Shown piece by piece: positions 3,427 through 53,025 of a stretch of 64,000 nucleotides of DNA (position 1 is the stretch's first letter; every line of letters begins with the position of its first letter). Source of the DNA: Podarcis vaucheri (lineage: Eukaryota). The DNA lies in NCBI GenBank assembly GCA_965113315.1, contig OZ220377.1. One strand, 5' to 3'. Made by a program: the position numbers and the translations under genes. The notes beneath the pieces were generated by a model. The model ran no database searches, was not told the origin of the DNA, and worked only from the letters and a program-made list of their open reading frames with translations.

Positions 3427-3655
3427 ACTTGCAGTTGCATATCAGACCTGAGCTACACCCCCCTGTTCTTAGCTGCCCAGAGAGCGATTTATTAGGCGAT
3501 TTGCTCTGTGCCATAATCTCTCGAGGTTCCGAGAACATGTCAGCGGCGTGTGAAAGTCTTAGTGGGAAACTGCTTCCTAGGACACTCCGGCAGTTCATTT
3601 GGATTGATAAACTCCTGAGAGCCATCTCTGGAAGCCCGCAAACCAAAGAACTCAT
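3427..3655 (+). CDS. Exon E3 (LQLHIRPELH...SGKLLPRTLRQFIWIDKLL...KEL), start of TBC-like domain
   Basis: ttttcag acceptor, AT|gtaagt donor; phase 1 to 2. Confidence 0.85.
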
Positions 3656-6600
3656 GTAAGTATCTCCGGGAGTGCAGCTGAAGAGGGGGAAGACAAGTTC
3701 CTGACCGCTCCCCTCCCTATGTTGATGAAGCAGGGGCTGTGAACAGTGGAGCATGTGCTTAGTGTGTAGAAGGCCCCGGACCCAATCCTCACCAAAGGAG
3801 CTTGAGTATTAGGCTAGGAAAGACGTCTGTGTCCCGGAATGGCTCCTGGCTGCACACCCTCTCAGCAGGGACTGTGAGGAGAATCATCCATGGCGGTGAC
3901 CAACCTGTGAGACAATGCTTGGCACAGCAGTAGAGTCGGCCATTGCTGGTGCTGTGAAGGCATAGATGTCTTCTGGTCTGATGTGAGATCCCATGGGGAA
4001 AAGCAGGAAGTCTGGTTGAATTCTGCAGAACCATGGACAGCTCTGAGTGACCAACTTGCTCCAACAGAGACAGGCAGCAGGCTTAGGCCTTTTGTGCCTC
4101 TACCTCCCCAGACTGCCTCCTCCAGTCTCCACACCCTGAGAGAGTCTCAGTCTTAAAGAGCCAGCCCTCTAGCCTGAAGGTGGGCCCCCCTTCTTTCCAC
4201 AGCCTTCCTCCTGGTGCTCCGCTGCCCCTGTCAGACTGGTGATGTGCAAGGGGAGTCACCTAGTTCTTTATGTTCAGGGGAAGGTGTCCAGACTCTGGCC
4301 CTATAAGCCCTAGTGGTCAGGGAGTTTCCTCTGGGAGTTGGAAGAATCATAGAGTTGGAAGGGTCATTTACTCTAACCCCCTGCAATGCAGGAATCTCAA
4401 CTAAAGTTTCTGTCAGGTGTGTGTGCAGGAGCCAGGCCCTGTGACCAATAGGACTTTGCAGGACTGGGGCCTTCCTAAGTTTGTTCTGAAGAGGCAAGGC
4501 ATGGCCTCACAGGTGAGGCTGATTGGTAACTCACAGCGCCTGGTGGCAAGAGCTGGAAAGGGTGATAAGGTCAGCATTTCCCTTCAGCTCTTTGCCACAG
4601 CAACACGCTTCCTGCCTTGCTGCATTTGGCTTCTTGCTTCCTGATCCTTGAACCTTGGCTTCTTGACTCCCTGCTTCTTGATCCTCGGACCCTTGGCTTC
4701 TTGACTCCTTGCTTCCTGAGCCTCGGACCCTTGGCTTCTTGACTCCTTTCTCTCTGACCCTTGGACTCTTGGCTTCCTGACTCCTGGCTTCTGGACCCCC
4801 GTTCCTACTCCCACCCTACCATCTTGCCCCAGGTCCTGATGTCCCCTGCTGGGACTTTGATCACCCGTGAACCGGACCATGACAGTTTCCATGACAGATG
4901 GCCACCCAACCTCTTAAACTTAAAGGCTTCCAAGGAAGAAGCGCCCACAACCTCCTGAGGGAGTCCATTCCACTGTCAAACAGCTCTGTCAGAAAGTTCT
5001 TCCTGTTGGTAGGGTTGAATAATCTGTCTTGAAGATTTGGTCATTGCTTCTGCTTTCTGGCACTTTGAACTCCGCTTCTGGCTCCATTCAATTAAAAAAA
5101 ATGAGTCCTGAGACCTATTTTAAAAAACCCAAAACTATAAAATCTATCCTAGGGCTACTGAGAGAGACGCCAGAGAGGACTTTGGGCAAACTGTAGCATG
5201 GCGGATGGCGGAACTGAGTCTCCGAAGTGCCACACGGTCACCTCTTTCAGGTCTTATTGAAAATGCAGTTGTAGAGGTGAGTTGAAGGACCCTGGCAGTT
5301 ACAGGCATGTGCGAAGGGTATGCCCAGACACACCCTAATATTTCAAAAAACGGGGGATTGTGGTGAGGAGGAAGAGGGTATGGAGCAGCAACCCAGTTCC
5401 CTCAACTTCCATGACTCAGTGGGAAGCTGTGGGGTGGGGGTGGGGGTGGGGGTGGGGGTGGGGGAAGAAGCAGACAGAGAGAGAGGCAGGCAAAATAAAA
5501 AGGCTGGAATGGCCCTGCAGTTTCTGCCTACGCCTGTCTCTGGAAGTGGAAGTGTTTCCAGCAGTGACTTGACCTGGTGCTACTATTTGTATATAGAGCT
5601 CATAACGGCTTGGGACCAGTTTATCTGCAAAATCACCGTACCCCAAATGTGCCCATTTAACCACTTCAGTCTGCAGAACAGCACTGTTACAGGTGCCATG
5701 ATACTCATTCTGGATTTGTTAAGAAGTCAGTCTTTTAGTGTTGCAGGACACTCACTTTGGAACCCCCAGCCTATCAGGCAGGCATCTTCGCCATTGTCCT
5801 TTTGAGGCCTGCTTAAGGCTTTTTTTGTTTAGGCAAAGCCTATCCAGACATGTAGAATGTTGGTATGTTTTTTCTAATCTGGTTGTCGTTTACTGTTGAT
5901 TTTAAATATTATTTTTGGGAATGTTTCAAATAGCTGTTTTAAATTGTTTATACTGATATTGTTCTTTTTGTTTTGATCCTTTTCCCCCGGCAAGTGGCAT
6001 ATAAATTTCGTAATGTAAGTAAATACCTTGACATGCTGGGGATTACTAATTGATTTAAAAACACTGAANNNNNNNNNNNNNNNNNNNNNNNNNNNNNNNN
6101 NNNNNNNNNNNNNNNNNNNNNNNNNNNNNNNNNNNNNNNNNNNNNNNNNNNNNNNNNNNNNNNNNNNNNNNNNNNNNNNNNNNNNNNNNNNNNNNNNNNN
6201 NNNNNNNNNNNNNNNNNNNNNNNNNGTACAACCTGGGATAATTGAACCTGGCATCTTCTGCATATGAAATCTACGCTCTGGCGTGGAGTTGCTGTCGTTA
6301 TTATTAATATATTTACTCAAGGCGGCTTACGTATAAAGCGACAACTGCTAAAATCATAGTTATGACCCCTTAGTTCCTGCTATGGGCTTATTTAGAAGGA
6401 CTGTGTTACAACACCAAACACACTTTCAGCTGTTAAAACTGAGAAGTTTTGTCCTATATTAACTTGAGTATTTTCACTCCCATGCTGTTCTCACTGCTGC
6501 ATGCCAAAAATACAGCATTCCCACCCCTCTGCCACCCACCTAATTTCTTCCAACAGAAATACAGAAGCGTTCCCTGCATGTGTTCCTTTGCTACAAACGA

Positions 6601-7566
6601 GCAGGTGATTTTGGAGACCAGCAAAAGCTTAAACGTCCTGTATGTTTTCAACGGCACCTATGACCCCTACCTCATCTACTGGCTTTTCCCTCTGCAAATG
6701 GCATTTAAGCAAACAGCACCAAGAGGTAAATCATTTACCGCCCAAAATGGCTGCAGGATTTCTGTTGTTTCTCTGTGTGCAGGTGTTATGCCTGCATCTG
6801 TTGGTAGGTCTCTTGGGTGATTTGAAGCGTTACATTATTAATTAAATTTATATCCCACTCTTTCTCCCAAGGAAGTCCAGGGTGGCAAACAACAAGAGAG
6901 AAAACGATAAACAAAAAAATATTAAATAGAATGCAGACTTGGAAAGATCCCCAAAAGGCCTGTTGAAAGAGGAAGGTCTTCAGTAGGTGCCAGAAGGACA
7001 ACAGGGATGTTGCCTGTCTCCTATTCAAGGGGAAGGATTTAAGTAGATCAGGGAGGATCCCAAAAGTTTAGCAATGGCAACAACAACATGAATGTCCTCT
7101 AAAATTATACTTCTGAAATAAAGAAAGCCATGGCGTTGGAATCTGGGAGGTGGAGTATTTCTGGGGTAGGTTTTCGTATGGAAGGATTGTGATCTCAGTT
7201 CAGTTTGGGTACTCAAAACTAATTCCTGGGCTTGGAAGTATTCTAATTGCATACTTTTAGCACCTAGGTTAGGCTGACATAGAATGGCTAGGTAATACAA
7301 GAATTACAGAAACCTGCTAGAGCAGGAATTGGGGAATATTTTTCCTGTTGGTAGGTGGGGGGGGGGTTAGAATTGGTGGTAGTTGGGACACAAGCCAAAA
7401 GTTAGAGCATCTTTCCTTTTCTCTCTCTTTGTGCCAACATTTTCTCTCTCTTTGTGCCACTCCTTTTTCCACACTCTTTTTTGACAGTCCCTCTCTCTTC
7501 CTTTCTCTTGTTCTCTCTTTCTCTTTTTGCCTCCCCCTTTTCATACTTTTTGACACCCAATTTCTT

Positions 7567-7622
<56 letters not shown>

Positions 7623-7958
7623 CCCTTTTCACATTCTCTTTTCTGCCACCCCTTTTCTCTGTCTGCAACAGCCTTTTTGCTCCCACCCAACTTGGTGATT
7701 GAAATGAGCTACTATGGGGGGAGTATCTTATAAATATATAAAGGTTAACATGATTGCTTTGATTTTAATTGTAGCAGAACACCCCTATGAATTAGCCATG
7801 TACCTGCATTCTCTACACCAGAACCTATTCCCAACTTGGGGGGAACTCTTTGTAACAGCGGAGTCAGTGATGAGCCTTCTGGAGAGAGAAGATGCTGAAT
7901 TCTTTGCTCACCTTCATCGCGCTTTCAAAAAGAATGTCACAGTTGACCCTAAAGTACC

Positions 7959-7989
<31 letters not shown>

Positions 7990-10900
7990 GATATTTGTTT
8001 GCTGCTCTTCACCAGAAGATTCTGGAGGAGTGTACAAAAGCATGAATAAAATTAGATAAAAATACAGTTTTGAAGTAAGGGACGCAGGTGGCTCAGTAGT
8101 CTAAACCACTGAGCCTAGGGCTTGCCGATGGGAAGGGCAGAGGTTCGAATCCCCGCAACAGAGTGAGCTGCCGTTGCTCGGTTCCAGCTCCTGCCAACCT
8201 AGCAGTTCGAAAGCATGTCAAAGTGCAAGTAGATAAAGAGGTACCGCTCCGGCGGGAAGGTAAACGGTGTTTCTGTGCACTGCTCTGATTTCACCAGAGC
8301 GGTTTAGTCATGCTGGCCACGTGACCCGGAAGCTGTACGCCAGCTCCCTCAGCCAGTAAAGTGAGATGAGCGCCGCAACCCCAGAGTCGGTCACAACTGG
8401 GCCTAATGGTCAGGGGTCCCTTAAAATGACATAGCTAAAAAATAACAGCAATTTAAAACAAAAAAACCAAAACAAAAAACGGAGCCCTCTCTGCCCAGCA
8501 GCAGCGGCAGCAGTTCTTTATGGAGACCGCCAGGCCCTGTCCTAGGCCAGGCGGTGAGTGGCAGGACTGGGGCCCCCAGGCACTCAGCAGGGGAGTCCTG
8601 GGTCCATCAGGTAAGAAAGGGGTGGGGTATCACAGTTCAAGGACACATCCTACTGAAGAAGAACAAAAGAAGGAACAGGCCTAGTGTGGTCTAGGGAGGG
8701 CCAGACAGGGAATCCCAGAGGGCCTTAAGTTCCCCACTCCTATATTATGCCTCAGATTCAAGAGGCAAATTGGAATGGAAAGTGCCCCATGCTTGTAGGA
8801 AGTAAAGAATGGTGAGGACCCTCTATTATTCCCCCACAAATGCTATGGTTCTTCCCCCCCCCCTTTTTTTTAGGATTTCCTGGTGGAATTGATACTTCAA
8901 GAAAGAGGGAGAGCTCAAGGGATCTGCGCGTTTGAAAATGGATTCCCATCAAGACAAAACGGAACCAAAGAAATACTGGCAAGCCCCGTGGTTTTCCTTA
9001 GGAAGTGGATGGGAGAGGTAAAAACGAAGAAGCCAGCAAATCCTTTTTTGGTAGAGTGGGGAGCTTGTCAAATAAATTGTTTGCCTGGCCACCCTTTACA
9101 ACTGAAAACTTTACTGAGGTGGTCAGAATATGTCACAGAATCCTGTTAGCCGCCAGATTTTAGACCCCGTGGAGGAGATTTCTCATAAGGGTGAAGTTGT
9201 GTAATGTTTCTGGAGTGTGTCTGCAGCACCAGCTTGCAGCCACAAGGGGGCTGTCCTGCAGCTACAGCCACACTGCTGTGTCCAATGTGTGCTCTGGCTC
9301 AGTGGATTCCAGATTCCCATTCTTCAGCTAGTGTTATGGAGGAAGAGGGGAGAAACTCCTTCCCACCTTGACCAACTTGTCAAGGAGCCCCGACTGCAGA
9401 AAGGACAGCTTCTATGGCAGCAATATCCATTGTGCTTACAGAAAGTGGCTAATGTGTCATGAAAAATGAAATAAATCATTAAAGGCTCCTGTGAGGCCCC
9501 TCCACTAGAGGGAGGCTGCTCGCTGTGTCTCTGCATGATTCACTGCTCTGGCAAGGTAAGATGTTCAAGCTGGAGCCTCACGGGCAGGGTTCAAATGTTG
9601 CTTCAGCACCAGACTGTTCCTTAAATAGAACCACAGCTCAGTTTGGGTGGCTCTCTCTACCTGCAGTGAGATAAGCCTCTCTTGTTTAAGCCTAGCTTGC
9701 CTCAGCAGCTGTTGACTCATGCTAGTGGCTACTGCTGAGGAACTGCTAATCCTGCTATCTGTGTGATTGGATCAGCGAGTCACTCCTCCTGCACAAATGC
9801 AGAATAAATGACCCAGCTGCAGAGGGGTCTTCCCAGTGCATCTCTGCGTGATTCATTCCTCTAGCCTCCCCTCCTTCTAATTTGCCTTTGTTAGGTGCAG
9901 GTAACTGTGCCCTGACTTTGCATCAGTTGTGATTGGATCACAGGACAGCAGAATTACTTGCCTTTTGAAGAAGCTGCCTGTTGTGTCTCTGTAAGAATCA
10001 CCGCTCTGGTTCCCAGTCAGCTTCCGCTGGAATTATGTGGTTCCATCCTATCTTAACATCATATGCAACTTGGAGCGTTATTGTCCATCTTGCTCTTGCA
10101 GAGAAGCAGGGGAGTTAATTGCCTTTGGAGTGAAGAGTGACTTACGCAGAGTGGGATTGCCTCCTGTTCGGATGGGTCATTTTTGTGCTCTCACATTCTG
10201 AAAAGAAACCTCTTTTGCAATGCCCTCCTCCAGTGTAGCTTTAGAAAGAAAATGGTGCCTCGGCTATCACGCATTGGGGAGACACTGGCACCAAGATAAA
10301 ACTGGCTTTCCTGTCTCGCATAGGGGTTTGTCGGTGTTCTGAACTTGCCTGCTGTCTTGTTGATCTGGGACCAGTTATTCATGAAAGACTGGAGCCTGGA
10401 TGTGATGCAGAATTTCTGTGTCTCCATCCTTCTGTTATTAAAGGAGTCATTCATGGCAGCTGATGACTACCCAGCAGTTCGACAAGTGTGTATTAGCTTG
10501 CTTTCTATTTGGGGGCTGCAGTTGGATGGGGGGGGGAGGGAAAGAATCTGGAATTTTGATTTCTTGCTCATATTCTTCCTCTTACTGGCTTCACTTCTCC
10601 CTGCCCTCCCCTTCCTTTCTTCTCTCTATACATTGCAATAATAAAAAACAAAACAACAGCCAGTGGACCACCTAGTCCACCTTCCTGCTCTCACAGCGGC
10701 CCCCCAGATGCCTGTGGGAAACCCACAAACAGGATCTGAGCGCAAGAGCACTGTCCTCTCCTGAGGCTTCCAGCAACTGGTATTCAGAAGCATCATAGAA
10801 CATAGCCATCATGGCCCGTAGCCACTGATAGGTGCTGGATGGAGAAGTATTCTCTTGTATCCATGTGCCACAACCTCAAGCATCAGCCAGGACTCGTGTC

Positions 10901-13900
10901 TGACACAGAGGCAGTGCACCATCCAGGCAGGTCTTTGGAGGAGAAGTCTTGAGCTCAGGTCCTACTTGCACTTCTGGTTGGGACTTCAAGGATGCTGGAC
11001 TAGATGGGCCACAGGCTCTTCCTGTGTTATTAAGCTACCGAGCTGCTGAGTACAGGCCCCCTAAATTGGGAGCCCTTGGAGACAGAGACCTCAAACTAGG
11101 ATGCCATGAGGCAGCAGCACTTCATGAACCAGATTTTTTAATGGGACTGCCTCTCCTGGTATGCCCGACAGAGGACCTTAAGGTCCATGAATAACCGTAG
11201 TTTAGAGGTCCCGGGCCCTAAGGAAGTCAGACTATCCTCCACCAGGGCCTTTTCAGTGGTGGTTCCGACCTGGTGGAATGCTCTGTCCCATGAGACTAGG
11301 GCCCTTCAGGATTTAACCTCCTTCCGTCGGGCCTGTAAGACAGAGATATTCCACCTGGCCTTTAATCTGAATTCAGCCTGATCTTTTATTTCCCTTCTCT
11401 TCCCTCCCCCTCCCCTTTTATGAAGATTACCCACTCTGAGACCCCACAGCTAATTCTCCCCTGGCCTCATCGCTGGCCCAAATGGAACTAATTCAGCCAG
11501 CTAGCCCTGGTGATTATCTAATGCTTATTTCCCCTAAATTGATTTCCGAATTTTGAATTTTATTGCTATTCATGTTTTTATACTGTATTTTATGCTGCTT
11601 TTACAATTAAGTGTTTTAAATTTGTTGTTAGCTGCCCTGAGACTGTTTTTTGAACCAGGAAGGGCGGGGTATAAATAAAAAATTATTATTATTATTATTA
11701 TAATTAAACCTCCAAAGAGCTACCAGGGGTCTTGGGCTCCCCAGTGCTTGCTCCTCATTGCTGTCAATGCACAAAGTGGAAATGGATGGGGAAGCAAGGG
11801 GGTGCTAATTTCTGGGCCACAGGACACTTCCTCGAGGAGGGCGGAGCTTAAAAGGGATAGTCTGGCTCAAAGGAGACAAAAGGTCTTCCTTGGAGCCAGT
11901 TGCCAACTTGGAGCTGTCTGAGGTCCTGAAGGCTCCAGTGCGATTCAGCTGGATCTGCCCGCCTCGTGGGCTCCTGCTGGAGTTACAGCCCTGAGGAAGG
12001 GCTGTCACCCATAGAATCATAGAACTGTAGAATTGGAAGGGACCAAGGCAATCATTTGGCCAACTCCCTGCAATGCGCGAATATTTCACCCAGTGTGGGG
12101 CTGGAACCACAACCCTGAGATTTAGGTGTCTCATGCTCTGCCGACTGAGCTGTTGCTCAATGGCAGATCATCTGCTTTGCATGCAGAAGGTTACAAGTTC
12201 AGTCCCCGACAGCTCCAGGCAGGGCTGGCTGAAACCCCAGAAAACTGCTGCCTGTCTGTGTAGGCAGTACTGGTCTAGGTGAACCCAATGGTCTGACTTA
12301 TTATAAGACAGTTTCCTATGTTTCTGTCTTGTTTCTGTGTCAGATGAGGATTTGGGAGACCTCGGTTCAAATCACAGTTTGGACCGGAAGCTCACCGGGT
12401 AGCCTTGGGCCAGTCTCTCTCCCCTGCCCCTCTGTCTGCTCCTCTGTCCTCCTCTGCTCCTCTCTCTCTCTCTCTCTCTCTCTGGCTAACTTACCTTCAC
12501 AGAGCATTTGTGGATAAAATGAGGTTTATTTCATTTCATTTCATTTTTAATTTAAGCAACTGCCTTTTTATACACAAAGCAGTTTAGAATCCATAGAAAT
12601 GACAAAATATACAACAAGTATCACACCTATTATAACAATCCGATCCAGTGATGATAATGTCATGATGAGCTTGGTAGCATCATTTATGTTAAAAAGAATA
12701 AGAAATAAACCTATTAGGAAATAAACCCATAGACAAAAACAATTCAGCCTTTCATAATGAATATTGCGGGGGGGGGGGGAGAGCGGAACAATAAGGTGAG
12801 TTTGCAGAAACAAATCATATTTTTCAGGTGTCCTTTTAAGGGAGGGGGGGAAATGCCTTTATTTCCAGCAGAAGGTGGCCTTGATGCCTATGAAATACTG
12901 ATGATCCAATCTGTATCATGCAGAGTGTTGAATTCCTCTCTCCCTCTCCCTCTCAGGTGTTTCTGTCTTCAGCCTCCCAGCTTCTCACAGCTGACATTCA
13001 AAGGGCTTGGATTCACTTACAGCAAGGGGGCTTGCCTGCTGATGTTCCTGGGCTTAATAGACTGAATCAAAGGTAGAGGACCACACCCTGGCTCAAAAAT
13101 ACCTACAAGGCCAGTTGGCAACCAAATAACAGTCGTACCTTGGATCCCAAACGCCTTGTGAGTCGAATGGTTTGGCTCCCGAACACCGTAAACCCGGAAG
13201 TGAGTGTTCCGGTTTGCGAACGTTCTTTGGAACCCGAACGTCCGACATGACTTCTGCAGCTTCTGATTGGCCGCAGGAGCTTCCTGCAGCCAATCGGAAG
13301 CCGCGCCTTGGTTTCTGAACGTTTTGGAAGTCGAACGGACTTCCGGAACAGATTCCGTTTGAGTTTTGAGGTACCACTGTACACCAGGGATGGGGAACAA
13401 CCCTAGCCATGATTGTTGCTGCTGCTGCTGTTATAGTTTCTTCTACTCAGAGTAGACCCGCAGAAATTAATCGACTTCTGTTAGTCATGTCTATTAATTT
13501 CAGTGGGTCTACTCTGAGTAGGGCAAAAGTAAAGTGAACCTATAGGAATTTAGCGACTTCCATCTACAAAAATGGATGCAATGGATACCGCTCATTGCAT
13601 CATAGTCACGGGTGGCTCTTCCTGCGTTAAAGGACACTGGCTTGGACTAGATGACTTCTGGAGTCTCACACTCCTAATTTTGGCATTCCAATTGTTGTGC
13701 TGGCTGCAGCACTCTTAAGCCACACTTTCTGCCCACTCGATCTTCCTCCTCTTGCTGAGAAAACACTGCGGTGCAGCCATTCTCTCATTTGACTTATAAA
13801 TTAAGGAGAGCAATTCTAAATCCTTCAGCCACAATGAATATTTTATACTGGGAAATTATGCATGCCTGTCTGTGCTGTGTGCGGAAATAGTTTTGCGATG

Positions 13901-24077: not shown

Positions 24078-24124
<47 letters not shown>

Positions 24125-34537: not shown

Positions 34538-34586
<49 letters not shown>

Positions 34587-34919: not shown

Positions 34920-34952
<33 letters not shown>

Positions 34953-43900: not shown

Positions 43901-44321
43901 GCGGGGCCACCTCTTTGTCAGTCACCTGACACCGGGTGTCCCCTTTTCCTTTCCCACGTGGTTTGAAATCAAACTCTGCAGACCAATGCTTGATCTACTT
44001 TAGTCATTTAAGTATTGGTTTATCATTACCGTTTCTAAGCAGCAATATGATGTACAGAAATGAGATTCGCACTGAAATGGTGAAAAATTTCCATAAGGAC
44101 CTTAAAAACCAACTGCAAGGTGGTGTGGAAATATGGGCAGCTGAATTTAAGATGGGGAAACTGAAGCTGACAGATTTTTCCCATTTCTACCCCAAATCCA
44201 GCTCCCTGCAGACCTTTCGTTCACCTGGGCCTGAGGAAAAACATTCAATGTTTCACCCATGTTATTGAATCAATAGTTGTCCACGTATAGCAGTAATAAC
44301 TTGAGGGGGCTCTTTTTGCTA

Positions 44322-44359
<38 letters not shown>

Positions 44360-45608
44360 CAGGAGATTAATAACCCCTCCTTCTGCCTTGGAGTTTATTA
44401 GCTTGAGGAGTATTTATTACCTCATAAGCACAAAACCCCTCTGGTTAGCATCTAATTAAACTCCAATTCAGTGCATGCAGTATTAGGGGGAATTGTATTA
44501 ATAGTAAATTTCAGAGGAAAAGACAGGGAACAGAGATTACCTGTTGGATTAATCTTCCCTCTCTTTTGCAGAAACTGCGTAGGAAGTGGGGTGCACAACA
44601 CGCCTTTGTTTCAAGGGGTGCCGAGTCCTGTGAGTACTGAACAAAATAAAGTAGTTTTAGATGAGGAACTGGATGGAAAATAAACACTGGAGGGAAGCTT
44701 CTGAGTGACATCATTTTTGAGAATGGCCCGTGTTTAGGTGGGAGAGGGGGGTTCTTGTTAGAAGCTCTCTAGGGAAGGGGAGGTTGGCCAAAGTCCTAGC
44801 CTGAGCATCTTCATTAAAGGCAAAATACAGATGTGAAGAATAATTACTGAGCTAGACAAGTGAGACTTTAGGCTCTGGTGGTTAATCAACCAAAGCTTTT
44901 GTTGATTGACCTCCAGGGCCAAAAGCCTAGAGGCATGGGGGATCTTTTTCAGCCTGAGGGCCACATTCTTTTGTGGGCAACCTTTCAGGGGCCACATGCC
45001 AGTCGTGGGCAGAACAACAAATGTAAACTTTGCACATCAGGCCAGTCACACACTCCTCTCTTGAAGGTCACATCTCTGGGATAGCTCAGTAGGTAAAGCA
45101 TGAGGCTCTTCGTCTGAGGGTTGTGGGTTCGAATTCCATGTAGGCCAAAAGATTCCTGCACGGCAGGTGGTTGGACTAGATGGCCTTCGTGGTTCCTTCC
45201 CACTCTATAAGTCCATGATTCTATGATTCCGTCCTTCATCCAGGCAAGCATAGAGGCATTGCCAGAATTCAAGGGCACATTCTAGCCAGGCAAAAACACC
45301 TGAGGGTGTGAAGGAGGGCGTGGCCTGGGCAGAGAGGGTGTGTGATGGGGGTGGGGAGTCTTGAGAGCCAGATAGAGAGGATTGAAGGGCTGCATTTGGC
45401 CTGAAGTACCAGTGGAGCCAGAATCTTTAACTAGTTGATCTAGCTATTGAACTAATTAAAACTTGGAGCCGTTAGTTACTAGGTCAGTTTTTAATGTGAT
45501 TTGCAGAATTAATTTGGTGCTTCTGTTTCTTTGGCTTGGAGGCAGAGCAATATCCCTGTCCAAACCCTTTTTGTTAAAATCTCCCCACACCATTTATTGG
45601 GGGGGGGG

Positions 45609-45651
<43 letters not shown>

Positions 45652-47260
45652 CCTCTCTGCCTCTTTTGGCACTGGTTCCTCGTAGAGCTGACAGAACTAA
45701 TTTTATTCTCTTTTGTCCTTTTCTCCGTGATGTAATCCTGCAGTTGGCATTTGCAGGATCCATATGTCAAATTGTGGAATGCTCCTATCCGCGATTGGCT
45801 TGCTTTGTTTTTTTCTCTTCCTTTTTTTTGTGTGTGTGTGTGCACGACCTCCTGGCTGTTGATGGCACAAACAGGATATTGTAGCTGCAATATTACAGTT
45901 TTTCAGTTGTCTGCTTTTAAACCTCCCTGGGTTCATGTTAGCCTTCTTTTATTATTATTTTTTTCACGGACAAAGAGAGCAGGGAGAGGTGGTTCTTTTA
46001 CACAACCAAAATGACTGTTGTTATGACAGGGGCTGTGTAGGGAGGTGAGAGAGCCTGCGCACTTCAGGGATCCCTGTGTGGACCGAGTCTCTGTGTCTGT
46101 GAAATGGGCACAATGCCATGCTACCTGTTATCAGTAATAGGTGGTATTTGTCCGTGGTCACCCTTTAATAGTGCTTTGCTTTCCCCCAATAGAAGTGAAT
46201 ATCAATTACTCACTTAGGCTGCACTCCTTAACTGTACAGCAGATTCATGCCATTCAAGCACATTCAACGTACATGTAAAGCACAGAGCTTCTTCCCAAGC
46301 CATCCTGGGAAGTGTAGTTAGTTAAGGGTGCTGGGAGTTATAGCTCTGGGAGGGGGGAGATGACAGTTCACAGAATTCTTTGGCAGTGGGGAGTCATCTG
46401 CTTTAAATGTGTATTGAATATGTTGGTTGGCAAGAAGAAATAGGGATATAAAAGGAGAATTCCCTGGATGCCAAGATCCAGGTTTGGGGCAAGAATGTGC
46501 TTGAAATGTCTGGATCTGCCCCTTGTGTGGGGTTTAAAAACAAAACAAAAGCACACAGTATCAGCAAAGCAGCTTTTTTGACATTACAGTGGCACCTCGG
46601 GTTACATACGCTTCAGATTACATACACTTCAGGTTACAGACTCCGCTAACCCAGAAAAAGTGCTTCAGGTTAAGAACTTTGCTTCAGGATGAGAACAGAA
46701 ATCGTGCTCCGGTGGCGTGGCAGCAGCAGGAGGCCCCGTTAGCTAAAGTGGTGCTTCAAGTTAAGAACAGTTTCAGGTTAAGAACGGACCTCCGGAACGA
46801 ATTAAGTACTTAACCTGAGGTACCACTGTTATGTTGCTGTTGTTGTCGTATTTATTCATTTATTCAAAAAATCTATACACCACTTGATTGTAAAAAAGAT
46901 GCTTCAAGGCAGTTTACAAAAGATAAAACAGTAAAATCAAGAAAAACTTGCAGCCATACCTCAAAACATACAATTACTAACATTGATTAAAATTACCTCA
47001 ACTTTTGAAGTTTCTGGGCAGGTTTGTCTAAACGAGAACGTCTTTAGCAGGTGCTGAAAAGAGTACAGTGGAGAAGACGCCTGCTTGATATCACCCAAAA
47101 TGGAGGCGATCTGGCCTGAAATCAGTGCCAATGGTGGCAGCACTTCTCCGCCACTGATGGAAGCAGCAGGGCAGGCAGGGGGCCCACAGAGACGCCACCA
47201 CAGGGGCTTCTGCTGCCTGAGGCAGCAGCCTCACTTTGCCTAATAACTGGGCTGGATCTC

Positions 47261-47312
<52 letters not shown>

Positions 47313-50300
47313 TGTGTGTTTTAAAGAATAGAATAGAAACTAGGGAAGAAAGGACAGGAATGGTGAAGGGGAATGTGGTGTTGATGTGCAACCTGGTCAT
47401 CAAGGCCTGTGAGTCATAACAATGCAGATTATCTCAAAATACCCCCCCCCCTTTCTTAATGAGTGTTTGGGTTGTCCTTCTGGAAGACATAATGTTTTTG
47501 ATACGATGTGTTTGCAAGGAATTTCTACAGGGCATAACCACCCGACCTGTGAAGGATGTCATGTCTGAAGGTTTACAGAAAAAGAGGCTCCGGCTTCTAG
47601 CCACGTACGGCAGTCTTGTTACCGAGGTGTGGGATGGCCATTACTTTGACAATGAGCGGCAGGAGTTGCCAGTAAGTTGAACCCTCATGTAATTATAAAT
47701 CCATAACAGACATTTCTTTCACTGTGTAGCTTCTCACAGATCCTCCATCTGTCCCTTATGTGTAGGTATTTATTTACTTTCCATTGTTTTAGAGCAATTT
47801 TCAATCCCAACCTTCAGCAAGACTTCTTCTTGTTGTTTGTTTGTTTATGATTCATCTTTACCCCCTAAGATCCCAGTTCTTTAATGTTGTTAAGCATAAT
47901 ATTTAAAACAGTTGCTCTCGGGGTGACTAACAACCCTTTATCCCCACAAGAGCTCTGTGAGGTAGGTTAAGCTGAGAGGTAACAGTTTGTCCCAAGTTCA
48001 CCCAGTGAGCTTTGTGGTTGAATGGAGACCACAGTTTTCATCTCCGGAGTCCTAGTCCAACACCCTAACCCAGCCTGTCCCAATCTGGTGCGCTCCAGAG
48101 ATTTGGACTCCATCTTCCATCAGCCCAAGAGGTTTTTGCATTACAACTCTTATCATTCCCAGCCAGCATGCCCAACAGTCAGGGATGATGGGAACTGAAT
48201 GAAAAGGAGGCGCATTGCCTTGTTAAGCAGGGTTGTGTGAAGGGGGAAGATTTGGACCAATCAGTCAAACAAAGTCATCTGTCTGATAAAGGTAAAGGTA
48301 AAGGGATCCCTGACCATTAGGTCCAGTCGTGGCCAACTCTGGGGTTGCAGCGCTCATCTCGTTTTACCTGCCGAGGGAGCTTCCGTGTACAGCTCCCGGG
48401 TCATGTGGCCAGCATGACTAAGCCACTTCTGGTGAACCAGAGCAGCGCACGGAAATGCTGTTTACCTTCCTGCCGGAGCGATACCTATTTATCTACTTGC
48501 ACTTTCGAACTGCTAGGTTGGCAGGAGCAGGGACCGAGCAACGGGAGCTCACCCCATTAGAGGGATTCGAACCGCTGACCTTCTGATTGGCAAGTCCTAG
48601 GCTCTGTGGTTTAACCCACAGCGATAGGCATTGCCAAATAAAGTCATGCTTCCCTGGGGCTGCATCCGTACCATACATTAAAAGCTCTGTTATACCACCT
48701 TAAGAGACATGGCTTCCCCCCATTGTGTGAACTGTGGTTTGTTAAGGGTGCTGAGTTAGGAGGCACCCCTCATTCCCCACAAAAAAGCTACAATTCCCAA
48801 AGTTCCCTGGGAAGAAGAGGGAGTGATTCTTACACTAGTCTGAGAATTGTAGCTCTGTAAGGGGGAATAGGGACCTCCTAACAACTCTTAGCACCCTTAA
48901 CAAACTACAACTCCCAAGATTCTTTGGGGGAAGAAGCCATGACTGTTTAAAGTGGTATAATACTACTTTCAATTTGTAGTGCAGATGGGGAAAATGAGTG
49001 GCTTGATACAATGTTTATTCATGTATCACAAACGTACTCTAAATGGCTACAAAATCCATTGGTTTAAGCAGTCCCCTTAGTGCTTAAGAGGATCCTGTTG
49101 GATATTTTTTAATGCAACACTCTTCAGATCTGGCCCCAACAGCCCCAGCCATTAGGCCCAATGGTCAGGGACACCAAAAAATCTGGAGGGCACCATCTTG
49201 AGGAAGGTCGCTCTGACCACTACCCTTTTCTGGTTTGCAGAGAAGAGATGTGTAGAGGTTCTTACAAGCCAAGCTTAATTACACAAGTTCAGGACACGGC
49301 TGGGAATGGAGTGGAGTGGTGGATTTTAAAAAAAGACAAACCCTTATTGGGCTCAAGGGTGCAGGAAAGTGGCTTTTGGATTAGAGAAAATCTAGGCTAC
49401 TTAGTATGTAAGAGTTCGATTTCTTTTTGTAGATGGTGCTTTTGGGTGTCTTAAAAAGGATGCTTAAATCGAGCGGCTTCTGGCATCCGGCAAGGGTTGT
49501 TTGACTGCACCAGCAGCCAGCAAACCCTCACACTTTGGTACTTAACTTATTGCCAGTCCACAGAGGATAGAGGGGGAGTTGTTGGGGTCGTTGTTTTGCC
49601 TCTCCCCACCCACCCGCTCAGGCACCCCAGCTTCAAATTAAAGCCTATGAATTACTATAACAAAACGGTGTGCGGCAACAGTTAAGTGTTTGCCAGTTAA
49701 ACTGGAGGTCTATGAAAACTCCTCCTTTATAATATATGGGGCACTGAGACCCTGGACAAATTAACTGCTGTTGCATGCAGCAGGAAAAACAAATGCTATT
49801 AAAGAATTGCTTAAGGAGTGGGATGTTTTTGTTCCCTATTGGAATAACAAAAATAAACATAAGAATCTTAGGAAGCTGCCATATACTGAGATGCTTGGTC
49901 CATTGAGCTCAGCATTGCCTATTGTGGAAGATTAAGGGCTTCCTGCCCACCTCCCTGTTTCTGCAGAAATCAGTGGTCCAGTCGTGCTTCTTCTGAGGTG
50001 CGGTAATTTCTGCTGCCTCTCTAGATCTAGTCTCTAGATCCGATTGATCCAGTCGCAGTCTGTGTAGACATATGGCATGAGCAGCTGCCCTCAGCAGAGG
50101 CTGAATGGAAGGAGGCAAGCTGAAGGTAGTGACTCATGAAGAAATTCAGCAGTCAGCCTCCTCTGAGGTCAGGTAAACCTACCGAGTCGTGAATGATTCA
50201 CACACACACCTGGTGTAGAGACTCGGCAGGATTATGCAACCTTGGCGGAGTTGATTTGAAGGAGGCAAGGTCAGAGCAGTGACTCAGGCAGGGACATGAC

Positions 50301-53025
50301 AGGTAGCTCCCTTTGAGACAAGGTACGGTATTTTTCGCTCTATAAGACACACTTTTTCCCCTCCCAAAATTGAGGAGAAACGTGTGTGCGTCTTATGGAG
50401 CGAATGCAGGCTCCTTGGCTTCAGCGATAGCAACGCGAAGCCTCCGAAGCGCAGAGGGAGCACTCCCTCCGTGCTCCGGAGGCTTCACGTTGCTTTCGCT
50501 GAAGCCTGGAGAGCAAGAGGGGTCGGTGCGCACTGACCCCTCTCATTCTCCAGGCTTCAGGGATAGCCGCCTGAAGCCTCCAGAGCGCAGTGGGAACTTT
50601 TTTCTTGGTCTCCCCCTCTAAAACAAGGTGTGTCCTATACTTGGGTGTGTCCTATAGAGCGAAAAATACGGTAATTCTTTTCCATCACTTGCGAGTGACC
50701 AAATGGTCCAAAGGCACCAGGTGCATTCACATGGCAAGACTGCCTGTCCTCAGTGGAGGCTGATTGAAAGAAGATGTAAGCCCAGAGCTCTGAAGATCAG
50801 TTAATCATACAGATATTTGGAAAGCATCCTCCCCTGGGGGTTGGTTATTTGGGCTTCAGGGCCTTTTGAATTTAGTTTCTCACAACCCTCTCATGAAGTT
50901 TTGTCTTTGAAAAATTGCTTTAATGTAGGTTCTCAATGACCTCCTATCTGTCGACAAAACAAGGAAATTTTTGGCAGCTCGAGCCAGCAAGAGGGGCAAG
51001 GAAATGTCACAGCTTGTTCTGAAAACCCTGGATAAAAAAACAAAAAAACTGGGTTGCACCAGCCTTGAATATCTGCAGCAAGAGCATTTTTACAAGCAAA
51101 CAATGGGGGCCGTTTTTTACAATGTTGTGGTAAGTGCAGAAATGGAAAATGGAAAGAGCATATAATGCAGTGCAAAGCATTCAACACTTATTTTATATAT
51201 AGCATATGGAGGTGTTTCAGCAGTTCTGGAGGTCTTAGGGGTTCAAACGACAAAATAAATATTTGGACTCGTCCACAACAAACATTCAAAGGACATTTCA
51301 TGGACGTGGTTTCTCCCAAAGATTCCTGGGAACTGTTCTTCATTGGGGTGCTGGGAGGGGTAAACTACAGTTCCCATGATCCTTTGGAGGAAGCCATGTG
51401 CTGTAAATGTGGAAGTGATATGTGGTGTGGTGTGTGTCATGCAAATAGGGCTGATCATTATCTGGATCACAGCTGAAAAGGTGACAGAGCTTAACACTTT
51501 CCTCTGTTGCAGTCTTGTGGGAAAGTTGGCCCACTCAGGAAGCTGCAGTTTGCATTTGAGGGAGGAAACCCCCCATTCGTGCCAGTGGAGGATTTTTCTC
51601 TTAACATAGCTCCAGAGTTAGGATTTTATTCGGGACTGCATGGGGATGGAAAGGGTTAACTCCCCCCCTCCCCACAATGCCTTGCCTTCAGCCAAAGTGA
51701 GCCTATATTCTGCAGTCATTTGGGGCTGCTGCATCACAGTTCCTCTCCCAAATGTTACCCACATTTTGAGGAGCCTTTTCCCCCTTCTTTGGGGGTTGCA
51801 GTTATTTAGTAGCTCCCAGGGATGACTGTGTGGATGTGTAACACTTTGGCTTTTATATGGCGGTGTTATAAGAATTTTAANNNNNNNNNNNNNNNNNNNN
51901 NNNNNNNNNNNNNNNNNNNNNNNNNNNNNNNNNNNNNNNNNNNNNNNNNNNNNNNNNNNNNNNNNNNNNNNNNNNNNNNNNNNNNNNNNNNNNNNNNNNN
52001 NNNNNNNNNNNNNNNNNNNNNNNNNNNNNNNNNNAGGTCCTGAACAAATTTACCTCAAATATTTCTCTGCAAGGTTAAAGTGGGAAACCTCCCCATTGTC
52101 TCTTTCCTCACAAATCCTGTTCTTAAGGGCACATACAAAATATGAACTTGGTGTGAGCCTGTGACCAGTGACCTAGATTCAGGAATTAAGTAGTTATAAT
52201 AACAAAAGAGTAGCCAAAACCCAAATAGTGCAATCAGGTAACTTGCCAGACAGGAGATAAACAACACACTCAGATTTCTGTTGTAGACCACCTTTTCTGT
52301 GAAGTAGGTATGATGTATCTGTGGGGTGGTCTTGGACTCCAGGGTGGGCAATTAAAAATGTCTATATAAGGGCTTGCATGCATGGCTTGGGGTCCTCCTC
52401 TCTCCTGCATGTGGGGGAGCACCCTGTTGCAACAGTTAATAAAGATCAGGCTTACTAACTGCTTTGCTTCTCAATATTCTCTGGTTGGTCTCTGTTATTT
52501 TCTCCTACCGATAGAGAACCTACAAAAGGACTCTATATGGGCTCTTGGGTATCCCATAAGGGAAAAGGAGCAGGATTTTTCTTATATCAGCTGGAATGTA
52601 ACCGGCTGCCTAAAGGTCACACATGGACCCACATTTGCCTCTTGCCCCACCCACCTTTGGAATTTACCCCCCATAAGGTTTTCCATGATGGCGTGTGGCC
52701 CCCTGGGGCTGAGTAAGCTTCCCTGGCCTTGCCTTAGGTTTCCTTTCAATGCATCTGGTTCTGATTCCCTGGGCTAGGGCTGCCTAGTCCTGATGCTTCT
52801 ATCATTTCTTCTGGTGGTAGCCAATATGTGATCCCTTCTAGATGTTTGCTGGGCTCCAGCCCCCGACATCTCTGACCATTGGCCACTCTGACTGGGGCCG
52901 ATGGGAGTTTTAAGCCCAGCAACTTCTGGAGGGTTGCTGGTTCTGCATCTCTGGACGAAATGAACACGGTGTCCATTGCATTGCAGGAAACAGCACTCAT
53001 GAATGCAGGATATGGTCCACTGTGA
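3427..53025 (+). CDS. Uncharacterised multi-exon protein (about 1,150 aa): degenerate TBC/Rab-GAP-like domain plus about 3 C2-like domains; 24 phase-consistent exons (E3-E26), 5' end uncertain
   Basis: Hand-spliced join 3427-3655,5153-5276,6557-6725,7775-7953,8874-9017,10324-10485,12957-13072,14152-14195,14939-15042,15820-15979,19008-19109,20056-20217,22239-22332,25359-25503,26235-26439,29050-29228,29798-29963,30664-30825,32072-32235,35837-36018,44572-44629,47519-47671,50929-51129,52987-53025 = 3443 nt, open throughout and ending in TGA. TBC-like motifs GKLLPRTLRQFIW and FLRKWMGEGFVGVLNLPAVLLIWDQLF; C2-like motifs LGWQKVDVF and LGWTVLPLF..V.SG.H..PLFQG. Confidence 0.88.
4343..5005 (-). mobile_element. 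CR1-type 3' fragment interrupted by a solo LTR
   Basis: agaatcatagagttggaaggg...cccctgcaatgcaggaatctc continues after 4889 with catgacagatggcc...agaaagttcttcct. Confidence 0.65.
4411..4884. mobile_element. Solo LTR with an internal tandem array of about 17-21 bp units
   Basis: TGTCA...TGACA termini; exact 5-bp TSD GTTTC (4406-4410 / 4885-4889); CTTGGCTTCTTGACTCC-like repeats at about 4625-4795. Confidence 0.85.
5153..5276 (+). CDS. Exon E4 (ATERDAREDFGQTVAWRMAELSLRSATRSPLSGLIENAVVE)
   Basis: cctag acceptor, GAG|gtgagt donor; phase 2 to 0. Confidence 0.85.
6069..6225. other. Assembly gap
   Basis: 157 N. Confidence 1.
6557..6725 (+). CDS. Exon E5 (KYRSVPCM...NGTYDPYLIYWLFPLQMAFKQTAPR)
   Basis: caacag acceptor, G|gtaaat donor; phase 0 to 1. 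Confidence 0.88.
7567..7625. repeat. (TCTG)n(TC)n microsatellite
   Basis: Direct reading. Confidence 0.9.
7775..7953 (+). CDS. Exon E6 (EHPYELAMYLH...EDAEFFAHLHRAFKKNVTVDPK)
   Basis: tagcag tandem acceptor, AAA|gtacct donor; phase 1 to 0. Confidence 0.88.
8079..8422 (+). mobile_element. Sauria SINE, near full length
   Basis: gggacgcaggtggc...ggttcgaatccc (pol III B box)...ctagcagttcgaaagca...gtgcaagtagataaa...aatggtcaggggtccc. Confidence 0.9.
8874..9017 (+). CDS. Exon E7 (DFLVELILQER...LASPVVFLRKWMGE)
   Basis: Long pyrimidine tract and tag acceptor, GAG|gtaaaa donor; phase 0 to 0. Confidence 0.88.
10324..10485 (+). CDS. Exon E8 (GFVGVLNLPAVLLIWDQLFMKDW...DDYPAVRQ)
   Basis: catag acceptor, CAA|gtgtgt donor; TBC C-terminal IWD motif. 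Confidence 0.9.
11143..11702 (+). mobile_element. L2-type LINE 3' fragment
   Basis: RT C-terminal RAFSVVVPTWWNAL...FRRACKT, 3' UTR and (TTA)n tail. Confidence 0.8.
12012..12152 (-). mobile_element. tRNA-head / CR1-tail SINE
   Basis: Reverse-complement relative of 45078-45230. Confidence 0.65.
12957..13072 (+). CDS. Exon E9 (VFLSSASQLLTADIQRAWIHLQQGGLPADVPGLNRLNQR)
   Basis: tctcag acceptor, AG|gtagag donor; phase 0 to 2. Confidence 0.87.
13130..13379. mobile_element. Tigger-like MITE, family B
   Basis: CAGTCGTACCT...GAGGTACCACTG followed by TA; internal body differs from family A. Confidence 0.8.
14152..14195 (+). CDS. Small exon E10 (PLVDLSPPRHGSAE)
   Basis: tgcag acceptor, G|gtacgt donor; the phase 2 to 1 change is needed to join E9 to E11. 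Confidence 0.7.
14939..15042 (+). CDS. Exon E11 (GKMCLDPGEISPTGVKDILLTVVLPVPRAETRHS)
   Basis: tttcacag acceptor, AGT|gtaagt donor; phase 1 to 0. Confidence 0.8.
15820..15979 (+). CDS. Exon E12 (ESLFKKFDPSAVKLTVSVFCG...GFTLQFS)
   Basis: ctcatag acceptor, G|gtatga donor; phase 0 to 1. Confidence 0.82.
16170..16390 (+). mobile_element. Degenerate L2/CR1 RT fragment
   Basis: DQLRSPGVILDSHLSVEA resembles the L2 ORF2 motif V++LGV+LD++L++E+. Confidence 0.6.
18036..18429 (-). mobile_element. Probable solo LTR with tandem CCAAT-containing repeats
   Basis: TG...CA bounds; TTTATT (antisense AATAAA); 3 copies of a TTGTTCTAGGACCAATCAGACTGCTGCA-like unit; TSD not clear. Confidence 0.5.
19008..19109 (+). 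CDS. Exon E13 (SFAFDSLDPTAFVGVQDAKPYILLKVTYSPKGR)
   Basis: gtcaag acceptor, G|gtaacg donor; phase 1 to 1. Confidence 0.8.
19247..19388 (-). mobile_element. CR1-type 3' fragment
   Basis: catagaatc...gttggaaggg...catctagtccaaccccctgcaatgcag. Confidence 0.65.
19407..19607. mobile_element. Tigger-like MITE family A, right TIR largely deleted
   Basis: Same body as 403-628. Confidence 0.85.
20056..20217 (+). CDS. Exon E14 (SLALGWQKVDVFQQ...VPLNPGEVPDAIMECPFRELPK)
   Basis: ttacag acceptor, G|gtaaca donor; phase 1 to 1. Confidence 0.85.
21310..21560 (-). mobile_element. L2-type LINE 3' end
   Basis: Closely similar to 34920-35180; (AAT)n tail. Confidence 0.8.
22239..22332 (+). CDS. Exon E15 (FAEGHSTIQLTVYDVANERRRLQSHRLREER)
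   Basis: tttccag acceptor, AG|gtaacc donor; phase 1 to 2. Confidence 0.8.
22490..22913 (-). mobile_element. Truncated L1-like retro-insertion
   Basis: 15-bp TSD AATCTGTGCAGTTTT (22475-22489 / 22914-22928); A-rich tail and AATAAA on the minus strand; TT/AAAA target. Confidence 0.75.
24079..24515 (-). mobile_element. L2-type 3' fragment interrupted by a MITE
   Basis: (TTA)n tail; similar to 24955-25262 and 34538-34777. Confidence 0.75.
24232..24473. mobile_element. Tigger-like MITE family A nested in an L2 fragment
   Basis: Perfect TIR CAGTGGTACCTCGGGTTA; TA TSD. Confidence 0.92.
24955..25262 (-). mobile_element. L2-type LINE 3' fragment
   Basis: ORF RAFSVMAPALWNALP...FRRHLKAALF; (AAT)n tail. 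Confidence 0.8.
25359..25503 (+). CDS. Exon E16 (LQGPSFLYAPWVPHD...QPFDLYIDALHYILDNATITK)
   Basis: gatcag acceptor, AAG|gtaagc donor; phase 2 to 0. Confidence 0.88.
26235..26439 (+). CDS. Exon E17 (VTGHFRNTG...SRNPEFQYR...WLLFQVHTIDMDFGDLVLL)
   Basis: cattag acceptor, G|gtaaca donor; phase 0 to 1. Confidence 0.87.
26790..27247. mobile_element. hAT-type MITE
   Basis: TIR CAGTGGTGGCGAACCT / AGGTTGCCACCACTG; 8-bp flanks CCATAGAC / CCTCAGAC. Confidence 0.8.
28369..28596. mobile_element. Tigger-like MITE, family C
   Basis: TA-CAGTCATACCTCGGGTT...AACCCGAGCGTCCACTG-TA. Confidence 0.8.
29050..29228 (+). CDS. Exon E18 (SCAIHIFNAEGELNVGGFQLKLRAG...IPCCTLLIRLLPHAQ), GC donor
   Basis: ctgtag acceptor, CAG|gcaagt donor; phase 1 to 0. 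Confidence 0.87.
29374..29556. mobile_element. Penelope-like insertion containing a 148-bp perfect palindrome (29409-29556)
   Basis: 13-bp TSD AGTCCTTTGCAGC (29361-29373 / 29557-29569); arms checked base by base, centre GCATGC. Confidence 0.8.
29798..29963 (+). CDS. Exon E19 (VPVPPPSYLAGYYFTDGAKPNSSELEII...MNKEQSR)
   Basis: ctttag acceptor, G|gtatga donor; phase 0 to 1. Confidence 0.87.
30664..30825 (+). CDS. Exon E20 (LPNQLKAWCVEKL...VRYRQEAGVRVRIKQAFGLK)
   Basis: atgcag acceptor, G|gtagct donor; phase 1 to 1. Confidence 0.87.
32072..32235 (+). CDS. Exon E21 (DGCYVNALARILKG...LDFSSLQRSPKWIDPSV)
   Basis: tttcag acceptor, GTG|gtatgc donor; phase 1 to 0. Confidence 0.88.
34538..34777 (-). 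mobile_element. L2-type 3' fragment with (TAA)n tail
   Basis: Similar to 24079-24515; carries the empty MITE site gttgttTAtttc. Confidence 0.75.
34920..35640 (-). mobile_element. L2 LINE, 5'-truncated, with ORF2 C-terminus
   Basis: ORF 35122-35619 IHATVTSRLDYCNSLY.GLP...QNAAARL...LHWLP...RIRFK. Confidence 0.92.
35837..36018 (+). CDS. Exon E22 (VLHPYLDDHSVLLVQIYGL...SQLGWTVLPLFDR)
   Basis: ttgtag acceptor, AG|gtgaat donor; phase 0 to 2. Confidence 0.88.
36126..36380 (+). mobile_element. Squam3-like tRNA-derived SINE
   Basis: gagagccagtgtggtgtagtggttaagag (A box)...ggttcgcgtc (B-like)...gtgaccttgggccagtcac; (TTC)n tail. Confidence 0.8.
39135..39555 (-). mobile_element. Solo LTR
   Basis: TGTTA...TGACA termini; 5-bp flanks GTAAG / GTAAA; antisense AATAAA (tttatt at about 39201). 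Confidence 0.7.
40040..40471 (+). mobile_element. BovB (RTE) LINE 3' fragment
   Basis: FPVVMYG..SWTIKKA..AFELWCWRRLLRVPWTARRSN...MRREDSLEKTLMLGK; (CAA)n tail; 10-bp TSD AGAGGTCAGC. Confidence 0.95.
41418..41586. mobile_element. hAT-type MITE with internal GGGTTAGGGGGCGCAAAT-like repeats
   Basis: TIR CAGTGGCGTAGC / GCTACGCCACTG; 8-bp flanks CTTATGTC / CTTATGCC. Confidence 0.85.
41807..42113. mobile_element. hAT-type MITE, GC-rich
   Basis: CAGGG...CCCTG termini; exact 8-bp TSD GGGACTGC. Confidence 0.82.
42212..42568 (-). mobile_element. BovB (RTE) LINE 3' fragment
   Basis: ORF RVPWTAGRSN...FGHLMRREDSLEKTLMLGKIEG; 12-bp TSD ATTGTCACCAGT. Confidence 0.95.
44572..44629 (+). CDS. Exon E23 (NCVGSGVHNTPLFQGVPSP)
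   Basis: ttttgcag acceptor, CCT|gtgagt donor; phase 2 to 0. Confidence 0.85.
45078..45230 (+). mobile_element. tRNA-head / CR1-tail SINE
   Basis: gatagctcagtaggtaaagc...ggttcgaattcc followed by ttggactagatggcc...gattctatgattc. Confidence 0.75.
45611..45649. repeat. (GA)n microsatellite after a poly-G run
   Basis: Direct reading. Confidence 0.9.
46587..46828. mobile_element. Tigger-like MITE family A
   Basis: Same TIR and body as 403-628. Confidence 0.9.
47263..47318. repeat. Compound (TC)n(TG)n microsatellite
   Basis: Direct reading. Confidence 0.9.
47519..47671 (+). CDS. Exon E24 (EFLQGITTRPVKDV...SLVTEVWDGHYFDNERQELP)
   Basis: ttgcaag acceptor, CCA|gtaagt donor; phase 0 to 0. Confidence 0.85.
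48288..48623 (-). mobile_element. Sauria SINE
   Basis: (AAAGGT)n tail; reverse complement of the 8079 copy. Confidence 0.88.
50326..50671. mobile_element. Mariner/Tigger-like MITE, family D
   Basis: TA-CGGTATTTTTCGCTCTATAAGAC...GTCCTATAGAGCGAAAAATACGG-TA. Confidence 0.88.
50929..51129 (+). CDS. Exon E25 (VLNDLLSVDKTRKFLAAR...FYKQTMGAVFYNVV)
   Basis: atgtag acceptor, GTG|gtaagt donor; phase 0 to 0. Confidence 0.85.
51864..52589 (+). mobile_element. ERV-type LTR spanning the assembly gap, in the last intron
   Basis: TGTTATAAGAA...TTCTTATATCA inverted termini (10/11); TATA box ctatataag at about 52362; AATAAA 52438-52443. Confidence 0.7.
51881..52034. other. Assembly gap
   Basis: 154 N. Confidence 1.
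52987..53025 (+). CDS. Terminal coding exon E26 (ETALMNAGYGPL*)
   Basis: ttgcag acceptor in phase 0, then 12 codons and TGA. Confidence 0.72.
   Translation, partial: ETALMNAGYGPL

Follow-up and report, generated by a model that had tools for sequence, protein, structure and literature searches.

Membrane traffic depends centrally on TBC proteins and C2 domains, whose human and yeast sets have been closely catalogued. TBC1D23 and TBC1D7 lack the Arg and Gln fingers and function as adaptors, acting as a golgin-vesicle tether and as a subunit of the TSC complex, respectively; to our knowledge, the known TBC proteins devoid of both fingers are inactive adaptors. The C2 modules of the PI3K, Aida and DOCK types, for their part, usually make phosphoinositide or protein contacts at membranes. 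The gene described here lies for the most part in a stretch of 64,000 nucleotides from the lizard Podarcis vaucheri (contig OZ220377.1 of assembly GCA_965113315.1), hereafter the window, and brings both kinds of domain together in one protein, in which a predicted TBC domain is followed by three beta modules, two of them clearly and the third probably of the C2 type. It belongs to an unstudied TBC subfamily whose domain order is found in no named protein. A survey of TBC evolution (PMC3655817) and a survey of ciliary C2 domains (PMC3495828) make no mention of a TBC plus C2 architecture, and no paper was found in the published literature under the LOC identifiers of the family or on a TBC protein with three C2 modules. 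A first reading made from the sequence alone had assigned the protein to no named gene, which agrees with the names borne in their sources by about 150 relatives, none of them from a mammal or a bird; these names are 'uncharacterized', 'hypothetical' or a domain label. The name 'Tyrosine--tRNA ligase' given to the Varanus komodoensis protein KAF7244413.1 (P0089) is a mislabel, as all of its 557 aa align to family residues 44-601.

In the window, tblastn and a junction search place 24 exons on the plus strand, from 3427 to 53025, with a total of 3443 nt. Exon positions were obtained by comparing family proteins with the window by tblastn, independently of the earlier exon list, and junctions were chosen for AG and GT (or GC) sites, an open frame and the highest identity to the reference protein P0057, which is isoform X1 of Podarcis muralis LOC114585224 (1374 aa) and the closest relative, with 87-100% identity per exon. 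Family proteins match the window colinearly on the plus strand from 3426 to 53022, and protein-like pieces are evident among its plus-strand stop-free stretches. The 3443-nt join forms a single open frame with 0 stops, the two alternative frames containing 55 and 62, and all introns are GT-AG except for one GC-AG intron after 29228, whose donor GCAAGT stands at 29228/29229, 3' of the best-conserved C2 exon. Thus, the 24 exons, their summed length, the single frame and the consistent phases proposed in the sequence-only reading were reproduced to the base by an independent junction search. The completeness of that model did not stand, since it misses a 5' exon and the codons upstream of it, and the gene was not hidden either, as NCBI models were already present (LOC114585224 and others); it is unnamed rather than unknown, LOC114585224 being annotated as 'uncharacterized protein' with 1374-1426 aa.

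With the additional 5' exon, the part of the gene in the window comprises 25 exons, 3618 nt and 1205 codons, which align without gaps to P0057 residues 170-1374, 1172 of them being identical. The encoded protein is about 97% identical to that of three Podarcis species, again with no gaps, and about 93% identical to that of Zootoca. The added exon codes for a poorly conserved linker N-terminal to the TBC domain (P0057 about 170-228), and none of the annotated lacertid isoforms has an exon between it and position 3427. The window does not contain P0057 residues 1-169, which puts the start codon and at least 169 codons upstream of it; the longest annotated isoform has 221 codons upstream. At the other end of the gene, 11 of the 12 residues of the last exon match Elgaria P0001 (91.7%, tblastn). 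If the transcript were left unspliced at 51129, the frame would continue for 11 codons (51130-51165) and end with the stop 51163-51165, which may serve as an alternative 3' end of the gene. Skink and Xenopus orthologues have similar read-through-type tails (...VVSEKK and ...IVSMEI), and the two alternative 3' ends may be old. As judged from these sequence comparisons, the lacertid gene is intact and single-copy, its exons from 750 to 53025 lie in the window, and it is the orthologue of P. muralis LOC114585224 (Table 1).

Table 1. Coding exons of the lizard gene and assembly gaps, in coordinates of the window (model, caecilian C-terminal fold model).
Feature	Position	Strand	Remarks
Upstream coding exon	750-924	+	100% identity to P0057 170-227 (tblastn); junction 924/3427 keeps frame and length
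Exons 1-4 of 24	3427-3655, 5153-5276, 6557-6725, 7775-7953	+	TBC domain
Exons 5-7 of 24	8874-9017, 10324-10485, 12957-13072	+	TBC domain
44-nt exon, linker between TBC domain and C2 module 1	14152-14195	+	
C2 module 1 exons	14939-15042, 15820-15979, 19008-19109, 20056-20217, 22239-22332	+	P0057 about 617-817
C2 module 2 exons	25359-25503, 26235-26439, 29050-29228 (GC donor)	+	P0057 about 845-1004
Helical insert exons, between modules 2 and 3	29798-29963, 30664-30825	+	model helices 498-546
Beta module 3 exons	32072-32235, 35837-36018, 44572-44629, 47519-47671	+	P0057 about 1102-1288
Penultimate exon, C-terminal helix	50929-51129	+	helix 817-844 in model
Last exon	52987-53025	+	stop TGA 53023-53025; final 12 residues identical to P0057
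Assembly gap (N run)	6069-6225		in intron 5277-6556; P0057 continuous over 5276/6557, length difference 0
Assembly gap (N run)	51881-52034		in intron 51130-52986; length difference 0

The two runs of N in the window fall within introns and no exon contains any N. Orthologue residues are continuous across both of these introns, which indicates that no exon is concealed in the gaps and that the frame is kept; the 51129/52987 junction, moreover, yields the exact C-terminal tail of the orthologue, ...NVVETALMNAGYGPL. At 1-749 and 53026-64000, neither strand shows a convincing exon from any neighbouring gene, and these flanks consist mainly of repeats and microsatellites, with GT/CA runs near 53250 and also near 47300. 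Copies of a short interspersed element, probably a lacertid SINE, occur in introns and flanks at 274-610, 19338-19633, 24158-24455 and 46452-46810, and the translations of these four copies have in common strings such as ...LQVTDSANPEIVPWVKNFASG... and ...EAPLAKVVLQVKNSFRLRTDLRNELS.... In addition, a segment at 39845-40445, inside the 8.5-kb intron 36018/44572, has a raised G+C content of 0.52, and its open frames resemble a retrotransposon protein tail (...RRLLRVPWTARRSNLSILKEISPE..., ...RRGRQRTRWLDSV...).

Fold models were made from two natural orthologue fragments, each with the family alignment. The N-terminal model is that of gecko P0085 (610 aa), with a mean pLDDT of 79 and values above 90 across most of 240-590, and the C-terminal model (m3343bb809727) is that of caecilian P0071 (850 aa, equivalent to P0057 529-1374), with a mean pLDDT of 81.6. 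In the gecko model, the TBC domain takes up residues 240-585, which correspond to about 245-590 of P0057 and to exons 3427-13072 of the window. The top Foldseek matches of this model are all RabGAP/TBC domains. In VIA, 23 TBC chains score between Z 14 and 21.6, after which the score falls to 5.5; the best structural matches are Gyp1p, TBC1D22A, USP6NL and TBC1D20 (Z 18-21.6, 260-300 residues aligned), with Gyp1p first at Z 21.6, rmsd 4.0 and 287 aligned residues. The modelled structure thus shows a true all-helical TBC/RabGAP fold, as the sequence-only reading had suggested for the N-terminal part of the protein. No structural match was found for the helical region that precedes it (25-182 of the gecko model). 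TBC1D23 (6jl7, Z 17.5) and TBC1D7 (3qwl, Z 16.3) have the TBC fold in common with the lizard protein. However, the likeness is one of fold only, at 10-16% identity and with no detectable sequence relation; TBC1D7 consists of the TBC domain alone and TBC1D23 has an additional rhodanese domain, both lack the C2 modules and the N-terminal helical region, and both are present in mammals, where the lizard family was not found.

Sequence profiles reach this domain in part. On single exons of the window, Pfam gives a weak RabGAP-TBC match alone (PF00566, frame 10324-10638, 13.7 bits, E 0.05, with a gathering score of 25.2), and the P. muralis orthologue, at 15.2 bits, also remains under the 25.2-bit gathering score. 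In full-length Pfam scans, the C-terminal part of RabGAP-TBC is matched in 16 of 17 members, and PF00566 exceeds its gathering score in Lingula (48.5 bits), Lottia (31.2 bits) and Crassostrea (25.9 bits). The matches cover profile positions of about 143-216 only and leave the first two thirds of the profile unmatched. Searching PDB sequences with a single protein, with the family profile or with the Lingula member gave nothing useful, and only the comparison of folds worked.

Canonical RabGAPs and the lizard family have the RxxxW motif in common, whereas IxxDxxR and YxQ read IENAVVE and YEP or YDP in the family. Across 54 aligned sequences, both R and W of RxxxW are invariant (54/54); in the window this motif lies in LRQFIW, in exon 3427-3655. 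The place of IxxDxxR reads I-E-N-A-V-V-E, with Ala and Glu each in 51 of 54 sequences, and its counterpart in the window, LIENAVVE, spans the junction 5276/6557. The place of YxQ reads Y-E-P, with Pro in 52 of 53 sequences, and is YDP in exon 6557-6725. These finger places, which we infer from the order and spacing of the motifs and from the predicted helices rather than from a residue-level superposition, depend on the order of TBC landmarks in the Pfam consensus, which we take to be a helix, 'I..D..R' at the start of a helix, 'L..vL.ay' and 'gY.QG...a.pL'. On this assignment, both catalytic fingers, Arg and Gln, appear to be replaced, by a Glu and a Pro conserved from molluscs to lizards, and the TBC domain is probably a pseudo-GAP. 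Since the replacements are themselves conserved, they would point to an ancient pseudo-GAP selected for a non-catalytic role.

The C-terminal model contains beta modules at about 89-289, 317-476 and 574-760, with a helical insert at 498-546 and a C-terminal helix. Foldseek returned 234 matches at E <=1e-3 for this model, and the best 48 of these 234 are all multi-C2 or C2-containing proteins, such as ferlins, E-Syt2, synaptotagmins, and DOCK5 and PI3K-delta at 16-18% identity. In a VIA search, independent of Foldseek, the best 50 rows are likewise all C2 domains. Module 1, whose loops have low confidence in the model, reaches Z 11.2 with chain 9zpc_B of a PI3KC3-C2 entry (154 residues aligned), Z 10.6-10.8 with the Aida C2 and Z 10.3-10.7 with the C2 domains of PI3K-gamma and PI3KC2-alpha. 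Module 2 reaches Z 9.2 with the DHR-1 C2 of DOCK180 (145 of 179 residues aligned) and Z 8.7 with the DHR-1 of DOCK8. It is the best-conserved part of the protein, and PI3K_C2 (PF00792) matches it in ray P0006 at 27.8 bits, above the threshold of 26.4; this profile is matched in 11 of 17 members at E <=0.05, with a best E of 1.8e-6, and scores 14.7 bits in P. muralis, under the same threshold of 26.4. In the models, therefore, modules 1 and 2 are clear C2 folds, of the Aida/PI3K type and the DOCK DHR-1 type, respectively.

Module 3 is all-beta, with a pLDDT of about 90 and an invariant GW...PLF strand, and is probably also a C2 domain. By hhalign, it resembles module 2 to a modest degree (P 0.0017 over 86 columns) and module 1 weakly (P 0.0074, 26 columns), the comparison of modules 1 and 2 being not significant (P 0.22). 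Its place in the Owenia protein has a weak Pfam PI3K_C2 match, and its language-model look-alikes in the Atlas, which are leads only and belong without exception to C2 families, include Aida_C2 (0.92), NPHP4_C2_2nd (0.89), PI3K_C2 and DOCK-C2; a CCDC17_C cluster (0.89) is also among them. No match to module 3 stands among the VIA rows listed, all of which are taken by modules 1 and 2. Hence, of the three C2-like modules named in the sequence-only reading, the first two are upheld by VIA (Z 10-11 and 8.7-9.2) and by the above-threshold PI3K_C2 match in the ray, and the third is only probable; the number and kind of the modules were right, and the exon ranges allotted to the domains were off by one or two exons.

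The PI3K and DOCK C2 domains differ from those of the lizard protein in their surroundings, since the lizard modules are accompanied by neither a lipid kinase nor a DHR-2 exchange-factor domain and stand as three after a TBC domain. Ferlins, extended synaptotagmins and Tetrahymena C2D1 give long multi-C2 Foldseek alignments (E 1e-9 to 1e-7). However, what they have in common with the lizard protein is the repeated fold only, as indicated by an rmsd of 18-30 A, a TM below 0.3 and an identity of 9-12%, and the lizard protein has neither a transmembrane anchor nor an SMP, FerA or DysF domain.

The range of the family was established from word-indexed profile searches, an exhaustive exon search and the Atlas. 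A phmmer search with window segment 29025-29324 against 1.84 billion cluster representatives yielded 23 proteins, with full-length matches of 1250-1340 aa in electric ray, Xenopus, newt, bichir and an annelid. Invertebrate members come from many molluscs, an annelid, a brachiopod, nemerteans, echinoderms, a hemichordate and amphioxus, with one fragment each from krill and a flatworm, and one Atlas cluster (score 0.98) is from Cnidaria, so that cnidarians (sea anemones) probably carry a member as well. Among fishes, the family is present in lampreys, sharks, rays, bichir, paddlefish, sturgeon, gar, bowfin, elopomorph teleosts and coelacanth, and among tetrapods in frogs (Xenopus LOC100490302), salamanders, caecilians, turtles, alligator and many lizards. 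In the protein databases searched, no member was found in mammals, birds, snakes, iguanians or clupeocephalan teleosts, nor in human, mouse, chicken or zebrafish, and apparently none in fly or worm; the same searches gave none outside animals. Turtle and alligator members are 50-60% identical to those of lizards and frogs, at which level annotated orthologues of birds or mammals would have been found had they existed. In a FastTree phylogeny of 38 members, every species has a single copy and the branching matches the species tree, which makes the mammal and bird absences separate losses. On sequence grounds, the family is shown to be old and vertically inherited across animals, and the ancient family conjectured at first sight is substantiated by members from molluscs to lizards, probably by those of cnidarians, and by a tree that follows the species tree.

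The protein may work as a non-catalytic adaptor or tether in membrane trafficking, a reading to which a probability of about 0.5 is given. According to it, the pseudo-GAP TBC domain would, in the manner of TBC1D7 and TBC1D23, bind a partner, which may be a Rab-like GTPase or some other protein, with no stimulation of GTP hydrolysis, and the three C2 modules would keep the protein attached to a membrane or to a protein scaffold. The sequence-only reading had also proposed a coupling of Rab binding to membrane targeting, which would have to operate with a domain from which both catalytic fingers appear to be missing. The analogy with TBC1D7 and TBC1D23, together with the contacts that such C2 modules usually make, favours this role.

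It is also conceivable, if unlikely, that the protein is a ciliary or centriolar factor whose C2 modules target the ciliary base, tip or axoneme, the TBC domain serving in ciliary trafficking or having a structural role. The best Foldseek match of the protein is 9nw3_3A, a chain of the Tetrahymena ciliary tip central pair (E 1.7e-9), and central-apparatus chains from mouse sperm and Chlamydomonas are also among the matches; moreover, a TBC-fold chain, 9qzf_v, is present in the A-C linker of the Tetrahymena centriole (Z 14.1), and module 3 has NPHP4_C2_2nd, RPGR1_C and Aida_C2 among its Atlas look-alikes. Nevertheless, the chain 9nw3_3A is C2D1, a tandem-C2 protein that is not conserved and whose function is unknown (PMC11642885), and the match reflects tandem-C2 geometry (rmsd 18, TM 0.27), with ferlins, E-Syt, DOCK and PI3K scoring similarly. 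A ciliary role based on the top Foldseek match was dropped on this account. In addition, no member was found in mammals or birds, although all kinds of cilia exist there, nor outside animals; Pfam models of the B9-C2, CC2D2A, CEP76 and C2CD3 types have no match, and those of NPHP4, AHI1, B9/MKS1, CC2D2A and RPGRIP1L gave none in 30 scans of family members. The ciliary trafficking role put forward in the sequence-only reading thus loses its footing, since the phyletic pattern does not track cilia and the top ciliary match is a generic tandem-C2 protein.

Less likely still, the protein could be an active but unconventional RabGAP, in which catalysis is supplied by a partner or by other residues, for instance the Arg that is nearly invariant in the helix following RxxxW, and the C2 modules recruit it to the membrane of its substrate. 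Consistent with this, the entire TBC fold is kept, RxxxW and several other residues are invariant, and other Arg and Gln residues are conserved (R306, Q387 and Q521 in P0085 numbering). However, Glu and Pro occupy the finger places in >94% of the 54 sequences, which range from molluscs to lizards, and TBC proteins without fingers are, as far as is generally known, inactive adaptors. That the lizard gene is decaying or an annotation artefact, with exon-like remnants that make no protein, is scarcely credible in the face of 1205 stop-free codons, 24 junctions at which the splice sites are canonical and the phase is kept, a gapless 97% identity with three Podarcis species, an intact exon 750-924 that is 100% identical to the P. 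muralis protein, and the absence of any annotated isoform that uses the sequence between 924 and 3427.

A broader picture, regarded as rather probable, is that the family is an undescribed, animal-wide TBC subfamily that combines an obligate pseudo-GAP with three C2 modules, has remained single-copy for >600 million years and has disappeared separately from mammals, from birds, from most teleosts and from the standard invertebrate models. The TBC and C2 superfamilies contain a large, strongly conserved member without a name, a paper or a phenotype, which can be attributed to its not being found in human, mouse, chicken and zebrafish and, apparently, in fly and worm. Members in Xenopus (LOC100490302), oyster and amphioxus make direct study possible. 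The conserved replacement of both predicted fingers would represent a clean case of an ancient pseudo-enzyme, and the independent losses in mammals and birds pose the question of which function became dispensable in them. If this picture is true, the independent losses would explain why the family escaped study, and the family may be the sign of a step in trafficking, or one associated with cilia, for which those lineages found a replacement or which they abandoned.
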